Part shown: positions 14,774-26,026 of the stretch, one piece after another
Layout: each line of letters opens with the position of its first letter
Position numbering within the stretch: position 1 is the first letter of the stretch
Sequence record: PV764602.1
Length of the DNA stretch: 64,000 nt
Reading direction: 5' to 3' (one strand)
Notes under the pieces: model-generated
The model's input: the letters and a program-made list of their open reading frames with translations, nothing else
The model's database searches: none
What the model was told of the DNA's origin: nothing
Position numbers and translations under genes: made by a program

Positions 14774-16171
14774 GTGGGCAGTAAGTTCAAGCGAGAAAGT
14801 AAAAACGCAATTCAGGGTGGCTTCGGTGGTGCCCGCAAGTCTAAGGATTCGCAGAAGCGTTTCTCCGACCTTGTGGAGTTCCACACGTGGCCACCGAAGA
14901 AGTGGTCCGCGATTCGTTTCGTCGGCCCGCTGGTGTGCGAAGGTCTGCACTGGATTGAAATCAAGAAGCAGGACGGCAGCAAGACTTCGATTCCGAAGAA
15001 GTGCTTGGCGTTCGATCCCCTGACGCAGCAGCGCGACAGCACGAAGAAGTGCCCATACTGCATCAATCTGCCGCGCAAGACGGAGAAGGATCGTCAGAAG
15101 TATCGCTTCACGATCAACTACTACCGGAACGCCATCATCCGCACGCTGGCTGATAAGGCACCGCGCAAGATCAAGATGACCGAGGCTGAGAAGTCGTGTG
15201 GTTACAAGGACAAGGAAAGCGACAGCTGGACTCCTTGCCGTGTGATTCGCATGTCTCCGTCGCTGGTGGGCAAGGTTGCACGTCTGGAAGAACTGAACAT
15301 CCACAAGGTTAAGGATAAGAAGTCCGGCACCAAGAAGTCCAAGAGCTTCGACATTGGTGATGACCAGTACGGTCTGGACCTGACCATCCAGTTTGACAAG
15401 GATCGTCCGGGCACGGATATGTACGACGTGCAGAAGGGTGAGAAGTCGCCGCTGACCGAGGAAGAGCAGGGCTACCTGCTGTGGGATTTGGATCAGATGC
15501 CGGAAGCGGAAGACCTCAAGAGCGCTGAGGAAGAAGTCATCAAGCTGGGCTTCGGCAAGAAGCCGGACGCTGACGAAGACGAAGACGACGATGATGACAA
15601 GCCCAAGAAGGGTAAGGGCAAGTCGAAGGGTAAGTCGAAGTCGGATGACGATGATGACGATGATGACGATGATGATTCGGATGATGACGATGACGACGAC
15701 GATGAGGAAGACGACGCGTTCGCCAAGAAGTCGAAGGGCAAGAAGTCGAAGAAGTCTTCGGATGACGATGATGATGACGACGATGACGACGAGGACGAGG
15801 ACGATGATGAACCCAAGAAGGGTAAGGGTAAAGGCAAGAAGCCTGTGAAGGGTAAGGGTAAGGGCAAGAAGTCTTCGGACGAAGATGACGATGACGATGA
15901 TGACGATGACGACGATGACGATTCGGACGATGACGATGACGATGACGATGACGATTCGGACGATGACGATGACGATGATGACGATGATGACGATGATGAT
16001 GATGATGATGATGATGATGATGATGATGATGATGATGATGATGATGATGATGAGGACGAGAAGCCCAAGAAGGGTAAGGGCAAGAAGCCTGTGAAGGGCA
16101 AGGAAAAGAAGCCTGCCAAGAAGTCCAAGGAAAAGCCCGCTAAGGGCAAGAAGTCGAAGAAGTCCAAGTAA
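14774..16171 (+). CDS. gp32-like single-stranded DNA-binding protein with about 200 aa Asp/Lys block tail
   Basis: RBS AGGAGA + GTG; H..C...CPYC zinc set, YYRNAI, DIGD...GLDL.I, YD; precedes RecA. Confidence 0.7.
   Translation: MGSKFKRESKNAIQGGFGGARKSKDSQKRFSDLVEFHTWPPKKWSAIRFVGPLVCEGLHWIEIKKQDGSKTSIPKKCLAFDPLTQQRDSTKKCPYCINLPRKTEKDRQKYRFTINYYRNAIIRTLADKAPRKIKMTEAEKSCGYKDKESDSWTPCRVIRMSPSLVGKVARLEELNIHKVKDKKSGTKKSKSFDIGDDQYGLDLTIQFDKDRPGTDMYDVQKGEKSPLTEEEQGYLLWDLDQMPEAEDLKSAEEEVIKLGFGKKPDADEDEDDDDDKPKKGKGKSKGKSKSDDDDDDDDDDDSDDDDDDDDEEDDAFAKKSKGKKSKKSSDDDDDDDDDDEDEDDDEPKKGKGKGKKPVKGKGKGKKSSDEDDDDDDDDDDDDDSDDDDDDDDDDSDDDDDDDDDDDDDDDDDDDDDDDDDDDDDDDEDEKPKKGKGKKPVKGKEKKPAKKSKEKPAKGKKSKKSK
15992..16051 (+). 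repeat. Pure (GAT)20 tract within the Asp-rich SSB tail
   Basis: Counted directly; embedded in GAY-rich repeats from about 15570 to 16060. Confidence 0.95.
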
Positions 16172-16278
16172 CCTCGGCAGTCCCTGATTGGCCTAAAAAC
16201 ACAGGAAAATCCTTGCCTCAAAACGCCCAAAAGTCGGTAGGATTAGGGGTTTTGAGGCATCCTGGGACCATCAGATTT

Positions 16279-16314
16279 GGGAGGACGTGCTACCCCACGT
16301 CCTCCCTTATTTTT
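16279..16314 (+). terminator. Rho-independent terminator
   Basis: GGGAGGACGTG-ctaccc-CACGTCCTCCC then TTATTTTT. Confidence 0.85.
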
Positions 16315-16337
16315 CGGTATTTTCGACGGAATCCAGT

Positions 16338-24723: not shown

Positions 24724-24732
24724 GTATTCGGA

Positions 24733-24744
24733 ATCCTGTAAATA
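24733..24744 (+). promoter_or_regulatory. ATCCTGTAAATA box
   Basis: Exact copy ending 5 nt before the dnaX GTG. Confidence 0.7.
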
Positions 24745-24748
24745 ATCA

Positions 24749-26026
24749 GTGGCAGATGCCTCCATTGGAGAACCCGAAGTGAGCGACACGAAGAGTAAGA
24801 AGAAGTCCAAGAACAAGGATGGGAAGGTCAAGAAGAAGTCCAAGTCTACGGAGGTTGCAGTACCCGTAAGCGATACGGTGGACAATCGCAGCCTCGCTGT
24901 GCGCTGGCGTCCGAAGGACATTGATGACCTCGTTGGTCAGACGGAGATCATCAACAAGTTCAGGGGCATGTTGAAGACCAAGAAGATTCCGGGCGCGATC
25001 CTGCTGGTCGGTCCCACTGGCTGTGGCAAGACCACTGTTAGCCAGATGATCGCTCGGTACGTCAACTGCGAAACCATGAACGCATGTGGCAAGTGTCAGA
25101 ACTGCCTGATGCCGATTGAGTCCCATCCTGACTACGAGCAGGTGAATGCTTCGGAGAAGCGCGGCATCGACGACGTGCGCGCGATCATCCAGCGCAGCAA
25201 GAACCGTCCGCGCCTCGGTAACCTTCGCATCCTGCATCTGGACGAAGTGCACCAGCTTACACCACAGGCTGCTGAGGCCCTGCTGGTGCCTCTGGAGAAG
25301 CCACCGGAACAGACGCTGTATATCCTGAGCACCACCGATCCGCAGATGCTCAAGCAGACGATGCGCAATCGCTGTGTGCCGATGAACATCCAGCTGGTGC
25401 CGACGGCGGACGTAATCAAGCGCATCAAGTTCATCGCAGGGAAGGAGAACATCAAGGTCGGGGATGAGGTGATCGAGCATCTGGCCAACCTGTCGCAGGG
25501 TTACATGCGTGACAGCGTGCAGTTGCTGGAAGCTGTGCAGATGCAGCTGGCTAACAACCCGAAGCTCAGTGCCGACGAACTCAAGGCCATCTTGAGCAAC
25601 AACGCACAAGCTGGTGGTCAGGAAGGTTTGGACGACCTAGCGATCAAGGTGCTGACTGCGTGCTACGGGCTCAATCGTGTTGGCGTCGCCAAGTACATGC
25701 TCGACCTGCGTACCGATTGGGTGCCGTTCCTGTCCAAGTGCATCTGGCTGAATCAGTACATCGTGGATGCGGAACTGACCAAGAACATGCGCTACCACCC
25801 GAACGTGTGGCATAACCCACTCAACAAGCGCTTCGCGTCTGTCATCAAGAACTCGGTCGAGGGCTTCGATCCCAGCAAGGGCAAGGTGATTGAAATGCTC
25901 GCATCGTTGCAGCGTACCCTGATCGACCTCCGACAGAAGTGCATCAGTGGCGGCATTGCCAGCGTCGAGCGGATGATGATTACCTCCCACCTGATCGGCT
26001 GGGTTGTGGATTCCAAGAAGGGATAA
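24749..26026 (+). CDS. dnaX: DNA polymerase III gamma/tau-like clamp loader ATPase
   Basis: RWRPK..DDLVGQ, GPTGCGKTT, CGKCQNC, NASEKRGIDDVR, LDEVHQL, TT.P....T..NRC. Confidence 0.9.
   Translation: MADASIGEPEVSDTKSKKKSKNKDGKVKKKSKSTEVAVPVSDTVDNRSLAVRWRPKDIDDLVGQTEIINKFRGMLKTKKIPGAILLVGPTGCGKTTVSQMIARYVNCETMNACGKCQNCLMPIESHPDYEQVNASEKRGIDDVRAIIQRSKNRPRLGNLRILHLDEVHQLTPQAAEALLVPLEKPPEQTLYILSTTDPQMLKQTMRNRCVPMNIQLVPTADVIKRIKFIAGKENIKVGDEVIEHLANLSQGYMRDSVQLLEAVQMQLANNPKLSADELKAILSNNAQAGGQEGLDDLAIKVLTACYGLNRVGVAKYMLDLRTDWVPFLSKCIWLNQYIVDAELTKNMRYHPNVWHNPLNKRFASVIKNSVEGFDPSKGKVIEMLASLQRTLIDLRQKCISGGIASVERMMITSHLIGWVVDSKKG

Follow-up and report, generated by a model that had tools for sequence, protein, structure and literature searches.

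The first 64,000 bases of the genome of Xanthomonas phage PhiXhv-15 (PV764602.1, 228,725 bp), to which the stretch of DNA analysed here (the window) is identical in sequence, encode a protein that binds single-stranded DNA (an SSB) and has a long, highly charged C-terminal arm. Judged by its sequence and its predicted fold, this protein (14774-16171, + strand, 465 residues) is an SSB of the gp32 type that bears, in place of the short acidic domain, an arm striped with acidic and basic blocks. The charged tail is not peculiar to PhiXhv-15 but shared by a large group of phages, and Lys-rich tails occur on other proteins of the same genome, where they are concentrated on enzymes that handle DNA. 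We propose, at a probability of roughly 45%, that the SSB tail is a multivalent electrostatic hub, which regulates the SSB itself and gathers the Lys-tailed DNA enzymes on single-stranded DNA (ssDNA). By analogy, such a hub would be the gp32 acidic domain, or the linker of bacterial SSBs, on a larger scale.

The assignment of the protein to the gp32 type is based on four kinds of evidence, namely a family match, the fold, a set of conserved residues (one His and three Cys) and the charge of the N-terminus. The PHROG family phrog_15004 (‘single strand DNA binding protein’) covers SSB residues 22-304 with an E-value of 1.4e-63. Since a phmmer search of the core (residues 1-260; 14774..15553, + strand) against PDB sequences returned no match, a comparison of folds was needed. 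In an AlphaFold2 (AF2) model of residues 1-265 (pLDDT 67, pTM 0.64), the top six PDB fold matches were all T4 or RB69 gp32 cores (E 4e-6 to 1e-3, probability 0.99-1.00, TM 0.40-0.49); these cores were the only matches at E<=1e-3, with the next PDB matches at E>0.07. His59, Cys77 and Cys93-x2-Cys96, candidate counterparts of the zinc-binding His and three Cys of gp32, stand in the family-alignment consensus GxHWIE...KxCLAFDP...KxCPYC, with a spacing that appears gp32-like from the sequence. Finally, the N-terminal segment is basic (net +7 over the first 30 residues), as it is in gp32. The original prediction for this DNA, which had proposed a gp32-like SSB with an expanded charge-block tail, is therefore supported by the family match, the fold and the composition of the tail alike.

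The tail itself comprises residues 261-465 (205 aa; 15554..16171, + strand) and agrees well with the description of some 200 residues of alternating poly-Asp and Lys/Gly blocks with a Lys-rich end. Its residues include 99 Asp, 12 Glu and 48 Lys, Arg being absent, which amounts to a net charge of -63, and it is laid out as four poly-Asp/Glu blocks that alternate with Lys/Gly/Ser blocks of the KGKGK type before a Lys-rich final segment (KKSKKSK). Its acidic runs reach 34 residues, and the junctions from acid to base follow the pattern D/E-(E/K)-P-K-K-G-K. The charge-pattern analysis that had been suggested for this tail yielded a kappa of 0.70, far above that of 500 composition-preserving shuffles (z 17.8), at a fraction of charged residues (FCR) of 0.77 and a net charge per residue (NCPR) of -0.31. 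In both charged fraction and charge segregation, the tail thus resembles phase-separating block polyampholytes. A short acidic C-terminal domain in the style of gp32 was not found in the PhiXhv-15 SSB, which retains the acidic character in a different architecture.

The repeats of the tail leave their mark on sequence assemblies. Contigs from four independent public runs, which belong to four studies, all stop at 15631 and resume at 16066-16086, so that the flanks of the tail are confirmed and its inner length is not. In the SSB records of three of the sister phages, PhiXhv-12, PhiXhv-16 and Ep026, frameshifts lie inside the GAT/GAC repeats, with the DNA of the terminal Lys block intact in another frame; these are probably assembly errors or true length polymorphism. 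Because of the contig breaks at 15632-16065 and these frameshifts, the number and length of the Asp blocks in PhiXhv-15 have to be taken as approximate. As deposited, the SSB genes of PhiXhv-12 (L036:3001-4782), PhiXhv-16 (L037:3001-4738) and Ep026 (L039 and L038) are frameshifted or truncated, and small spurious open reading frames (ORFs) are annotated downstream of them. A practical consequence is that the tail repeats break short-read assemblies and have given rise to frameshifted gene models in deposited sister genomes. The Asp codons of the tail are mixed (59 GAT, 40 GAC), and the lengths of the Asp blocks vary among sister phages with 99.6% identical cores, the architecture being constant throughout.

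Such variation between near-identical phages, and the difficulty of assembling the repeats, is what one would see if the tails were functionally neutral products of replication slippage in GAT/GAC and AAG repeats. We nevertheless regard a neutral origin as highly improbable, as the alternation of blocks, the Pro-led junctions and the terminal motifs are conserved between SSBs whose cores are only 31-37% identical, and as Lys tails are concentrated on one functional class of proteins.

This conservation became visible in a comparison across the phage group. A tblastn search of the phage GenBank collection matched the SSB core in 95 phage records, from phages of Erwinia, Dickeya, Pseudomonas, Burkholderia, Rhizobium, Ralstonia, Achromobacter, Vibrio, Yersinia, Salmonella and Alcaligenes; this collection was used instead of a word-based protein search for SSB relatives, which gave only four matches, and a single-sequence scan of IMG/VR gave none. 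As representatives, we compared 14 distant relatives with hosts from Vibrio to Rhizobium, the SSB cores of which are 31-37% identical to that of PhiXhv-15. In all 14, the SSB has a charged tail of low complexity, 91-299 aa long, which with two exceptions is block-patterned, and three metagenomic SSB homologues carry the same kind of tail. Kappa lies between 0.40 and 0.70 (z 8.7-20) in 13 of the 15 family members, PhiXhv-15 included; GR11A, a Vibrio phage (0.31), and KoPa-5, a Pseudomonas phage (0.15), fall below this range. In the literature searched, we found no publication describing this tail.

The junctions between blocks have a direction, with Pro present at 45 of the 75 that run from acid to base and at only 11 of the 55 that run from base to acid, the latter being led by Ser, Leu or Val; this argues for a repeated functional module. 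At their very ends, the tails are of two kinds: poly-Lys in PhiXhv-15 as well as the phages of Erwinia, Dickeya, Salmonella and Vibrio, or an acidic tip with an aromatic residue, as in the W/F-acidic ends of PaBG, Lu11, RSL1 and P0011. The SSBs of Motura (L013:2471-3985) and P0010 end in DDDIPF, the exact partner-binding tip of bacterial SSBs, which suggests that they borrow the host's SSB-interacting proteins. This tip is absent from the SSBs of PhiXhv-15 and of the Erwinia, Dickeya, Salmonella and Vibrio phages; its presence in some members argues that the SSB tail serves as a partner-recruiting arm.

The net charge of the tail varies across the group: it is strongly negative in PhiXhv-15, RSL1, Motura and BcepSauron, about zero in the Erwinia and Dickeya phages, PaBG and Lu11, and positive in GR11A and KoPa-5. 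This distribution bears on the idea that the poly-Asp blocks are a DNA-mimicking decoy that soaks up DNA-binding defence or nucleoid proteins of the host. Acidic DNA mimics are a known phage strategy, and the extreme negative charge density of the PhiXhv-15 tail, with its long acidic runs, would suit one. However, the tail is net-neutral or net-basic in many relatives and always forms part of the replication SSB, and the mimics known so far fold and have patterned charge instead of homopolymer runs, all of which makes a decoy function very unlikely.

Lys-rich tails are the second half of the hub proposal. The recombinase encoded directly after the SSB, a RecA/UvsX-like protein (16338..17807, + strand; PF00154, E 7e-13; phrog_97, E 3e-33), starts with a Lys-rich extension of 45 residues (16338-16472, net +14, beginning MAKKAVKPAKK from the annotated start at 16338), just as had been noticed from the sequence, and has a short, acidic C-terminal tip (EEQEDEE). 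All 13 relatives in which the RecA start falls within the locus have a Lys-rich RecA N-tail. Less uniform is the clamp-loader AAA+ subunit (24749..26026, + strand; PF13177, E 7.5e-29; phrog_5846, E 1e-63), annotated as ‘DnaA’ in the record and called DnaX in the original prediction. The Lys-rich start ascribed to it is present as residues 13-33 (24785-24847; TKSKKKSKNKDGKVKKKSKS) and depends on the annotated GTG start, which relatives starting with ATG support. A comparable N-tail was seen in 6 of 12 relatives (JA11, Yoloswag, pEa17, Lu11, RHph_N46 and PaBG, where it is short).

The RecA and clamp-loader genes share a further feature. Directly upstream of both starts (16309-16337 and 24719-24739) lie a T-rich stretch and the sequence CGGAATCC(A/T)GT, preceded at the clamp-loader gene by a terminator-like hairpin (24690-24722). 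This element may be a phage promoter or leader element; allowing one mismatch, the motif CGGAATCCWGT matched the window 4 times where 2 matches are expected and is thus not enriched.

A third tail is found on a divergent TGT/DpdA-like protein (11630..13336, + strand), the last 85 residues of which (13079-13333) are rich in Lys with Pro and Glu (32% K+R, net +17), matching the Lys-rich C-tail of about this length previously attributed to DpdA. The family match of the protein is weak: over the zinc region with CxCxxC, PF01702 reaches E 0.07 and 12.6 bits, short of its cut-off of 26.3, and the match to the archaeal enzyme ArcTGT (1iq8, E 0.017) is below threshold too; a Vibrio phage homologue with 37% identity is annotated as a TGT-domain protein. 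QueD is encoded nearby (18121-18585), and the genome also contains a GTP cyclohydrolase gene. Both relatives with a clear homologue, GR11A and KoPa-5, have the Lys-rich C-tail as well. Two proteins without a Pfam or PHROG match complete the set. The ORF at 22398..22976 (+ strand) starts MATPRKKKSAAPKAKKVVKPAK, is rich in Lys, Pro and Ala over 22398-22475 and has a net charge of +10 over its first 30 residues, and the ORF at 6189..6782 (+ strand) ends in PKKKRKKKS; the basic start of the former and the KKKRKKKS end of the latter had both been read correctly. With a peak of 7 Lys in 20 residues, the latter stays under the threshold of 8 used for the statistics.

For these statistics, a Lys-rich segment was defined as any stretch of 20 aa with 8 or more Lys and was searched for in a six-frame scan and then in the predicted coding sequences of PhiXhv-15. 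Fifteen predicted proteins have such a segment, compared to 4.1 expected from shuffling within proteins. Among proteins assigned to DNA metabolism by the deposited annotation, 9 of 27 are Lys-tagged, as opposed to 6 of 276 others (Fisher p 3e-7, odds ratio 22.5), and none of the 65 proteins of the structural block is. Charged tails had been expected to be spread over the replication machinery, and the Lys-rich ones are indeed significantly concentrated on DNA-handling proteins. Outside the window, they are found at the C-terminus of the DNA polymerase (L005:37391-37483; prefixes L002, L003 and L005 denote pieces of the PhiXhv-15 genome, within which the coordinates count), at the N-terminus of a topoisomerase subunit (L002:49757-49840), internally in a second topoisomerase subunit, in two helicases, including a giant one (L005:32833-33030), and in several proteins with no assigned function. 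The topoisomerase N-tail recurs in about 10 of 12 relatives and the polymerase C-tail in about half of the relatives. Eight proteins of unassigned function with Lys-rich or acidic tails were compared with Pfam and PHROG, which gave none of them a function.

The hub proposal starts from what can be observed, that is, the anatomy of the SSB, its gp32-type fold, the group-wide conservation of the charge pattern and the over-representation of Lys tails among DNA enzymes; from these, we infer that the tails bind each other and thereby concentrate the machinery. The arm would be disordered and modular, a unit made up of an acidic run and then a Lys run led by Pro being repeated along it. Its acidic blocks could act as a flexible DNA mimic that folds back on basic DNA-binding surfaces and on the arm's own Lys blocks, which would provide auto-regulation and SSB–SSB cooperativity. 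The same blocks may bind the Lys-rich tails of RecA, the clamp loader and the TGT/DpdA-like enzyme and, outside the window, those of the topoisomerase II subunit, DNA polymerase and helicases. As Lys tails may hold DNA too, a tagged enzyme would be gathered on SSB-coated ssDNA and then passed to the DNA. In this way, proteins of replication and recombination would become highly concentrated around the replication forks of the phage, in the absence of a protein shell.

The recruitment of partners by SSBs has precedents. In gp32, it is the acidic domain that brings in proteins of replication and recombination. The C-terminal peptide of bacterial SSB does likewise (PMC7584906). Partner recruitment by disordered arms or acidic domains of SSBs is therefore already known. 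With T4 and RB69 gp32, the phage SSB has in common the core fold, a similar spacing of His and three Cys residues, the basic N-terminal segment and an acidic C-terminal region, which is partner-recruiting in T4. It differs in having 100-300 residues of alternating acidic and Lys blocks instead of an acidic domain of about 50, in ending basic (in PhiXhv-15) and in lacking a core with a sequence-level match to any PDB chain. Bacterial SSBs are similar in that an OB-fold binder is joined to a long disordered arm for cooperativity and partner recruitment, extending to the shared DDDIPF tip of Motura and P0010; however, their core is homotetrameric and not gp32-type, their linker is rich in Gly, Gln and Pro whereas the phage arm is a strong polyampholyte, and PhiXhv-15 lacks DDDIPF.

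Several points weigh against the hub. Across 12 related phages, the Lys content of RecA's N-tail showed no correlation with either the acidity or the net charge of the SSB tail (rho 0.22, p 0.48), a comparison of low power. RecA and TGT keep their Lys tails in GR11A and KoPa-5, where the SSB tails are net-basic or unpatterned, and the Lys tails of clamp loader and polymerase are patchy among relatives. The ‘DNA-metabolism’ class behind the enrichment is that of the deposited annotation, in which most PhiXhv-15 proteins are unannotated, and the putative contact between SSB tail and Lys tails is deduced from complementary charge. Moreover, tethering to DNA suffices to explain the Lys tails alone (PMC5714199). 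The co-variation result gives a strict pairing of SSB and RecA tails no support and fits Lys tails that serve mainly as DNA tethers. Of the earlier picture of an SSB tail that scaffolds Lys-tagged clients, the enrichment of Lys tails on DNA enzymes has been upheld; a co-variation of SSB acidity with RecA Lys was not seen.

A serious rival keeps the two features apart: the SSB tail would work on nothing but the SSB, shielding its DNA-binding cleft and setting cooperativity in the manner of the gp32 acidic domain and the bacterial linker, and the Lys tails would be ordinary non-specific DNA tethers that raise affinity or processivity. In Streptomyces TopA, Lys repeats increase the stability of the DNA complex and processivity (PMC5714199). 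The phage tails resemble this actinobacterial topoisomerase I in being Lys-rich, low-complexity appendages of a DNA enzyme; they differ in that PhiXhv-15 has them on many enzymes, mostly as N- or C-terminal tags of 20-85 aa, beside an SSB with giant acidic blocks. Lys tails are also present whatever the charge of the SSB tail, all tail-bearing enzymes act on DNA, and the basic N-terminus and basic blocks of the SSB could pair with its own acidic blocks. Left unexplained, however, are family-wide tails of 100-300 aa with 3-8 modules, given that T4 manages with about 50 aa. In addition, the DDDIPF-type tips of some members show that partner recruitment is among the jobs of the tail, and poly-Asp and poly-Lys in the same compartment would interact physically. 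On balance, we judge a complete separation of the two features rather unlikely.

A more far-reaching alternative, proposed originally, is that the SSB tail drives phase separation into a mesoscale, membraneless replication factory, which admits Lys-tagged clients and might keep host nucleases out. The tail's FCR of 0.77 and kappa of 0.70 are properties of phase-separating polyampholytes, and the near-neutral tails of the Erwinia, Dickeya, PaBG and Lu11 phages would suit self-coacervation. The strongly negative PhiXhv-15 tail, in turn, could coacervate with Lys-rich clients and with the H1-like protein XYR93111, a second polyampholyte encoded outside the window. E. coli SSB phase-separates and its condensates enrich partner proteins (PMC7584906), and T4 gp32 condenses together with UvsX in vitro when a crowding agent is present (PMC11951158), which makes SSB-centred condensation physically reasonable. 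On the other hand, the same T4 droplets are absent without polyethylene glycol (PMC11951158), a net charge of -63 disfavours self-association without counter-charge, and the missing co-variation of SSB and RecA tails weighs here too. The literature searched holds no experiment or imaging on this phage group, and the exclusion of nucleases is pure conjecture. We therefore consider a phase-separated factory unlikely.

Similar charge patterns are known from nucleolin, nucleophosmin and Nop14-type tracts, which share the alternating acidic and Lys blocks and the high charge segregation; an SSB homologue of a Rhizobium phage is even annotated as ‘Nop14-like’ in its record. For the nucleolar polyampholytes, binding of basic clients and droplet formation have been shown; in the phage SSB, both are putative. 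We rejected homology of the SSB tail to nucleolin or Nop14, the likeness being compositional only.

The absence of a recognisable shell gene is a further point cited in favour of condensation. Nucleus-forming jumbo phages replicate within a protein shell. No nuclear-shell gene had been recognised in the window, and this extends to the entire genome: the chimallin profile (PF25677) had no match in the whole PhiXhv-15 record at E<=1, with phiKZ gp054 detected as a control at 1121 bits, and phiKZ gp054 as a protein query found nothing in PhiXhv-15 either. A shell gene is thus not detectable by these profile and protein searches, which a very divergent shell might escape. No multisubunit RNA polymerase is annotated in PhiXhv-15; a sigma factor is present. 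With both searches blank, a link to phage-nucleus biology was rejected.

It is conceivable, if doubtful, that shell-less jumbo phages such as PaBG, Lu11, RSL1, Alexandra, Motura, PhiXhv and their relatives use a charge code, in which striped-arm SSBs form a coacervate on ssDNA and Lys tags act as address labels for the recombinase, topoisomerase, clamp loader, polymerase and a DNA-modifying enzyme. If true, such a coacervate would be the membraneless counterpart of the phiKZ phage nucleus. More generally, a conserved SSB arm of extreme charge and matching Lys tags offer a concrete hypothesis for the charge-driven assembly of a phage replisome, and the tails form a natural series in length, net charge and patterning for relating polyampholyte sequence to binding or phase behaviour.

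PhiXhv-15 is a jumbo phage of the myovirus type that is virulent and infects X. hortorum pv. vitians; PhiXhv-12, PhiXhv-16, Ep026 and Ep032 are sister phages with 97-98% identity to it. The paper describing PhiXhv-15 (PMC13340338) mentions neither charged tails nor a nucleus nor condensates. PaBG, Lu11, RSL1 and Motura have been assigned to jumbo-phage subgroup 2.2 (Iyer et al., PMC7824862). Upstream of the SSB gene lies the gene of the phage sigma factor (13734..14750, + strand; phrog_17569, E 8.6e-50), which served as an anchor for synteny: the order sigma factor–SSB–RecA is conserved in the 14 distant relatives wherever the locus reaches RecA. Near-identical phage DNA is present in public runs from 11 studies, including metagenomes of sediment, wastewater, honey and drinking water.

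XYR93111 (L002:44569-46332, corresponding to genome positions 76569-78332, - strand) is the second large polyampholyte protein of PhiXhv-15. It comprises about 165 residues of H1/AlgP-like Ala/Lys/Pro/Thr repeats, a domain of about 95 residues that looks folded and three Lys blocks led by EKPAKGGKK, which alternate with poly-Glu and show the same junction pattern as the SSB tail. No homologue was found in 12 distant relatives, and its restriction to the PhiXhv clade implies that it is not a general partner of the SSB tail. Since the PhiXhv-12 and PhiXhv-16 versions end in poly-Glu, the GGRGRRRG... end of the PhiXhv-15 protein reflects a frameshift in the repeat.

Smaller charged proteins were also seen. 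One, encoded between helicase and polymerase (L005:33681-34301), has an acidic run followed by KKKKKK. Two others, at genome positions 88854-89294 (- strand; L003:6854-7294) and 90044-90829 (- strand; L003:8044-8829), apparently share a beta-rich domain; one of the two has a Lys-rich C-tail, the other a Lys-rich N-tail and an Asp/Glu/Pro-rich C-tail of 90 residues. Within the window, the ORF at 43070-43855 (+ strand) has 14 consecutive Asp within an acidic stretch (43256-43363; EEDEEEADDDDDDDDDDDDDDAP), and a 56-aa ORF (50734-50904, + strand) has a strongly basic C-tail, RRRGKSKYTRKKGKRK, with 7 Lys in 20 residues.

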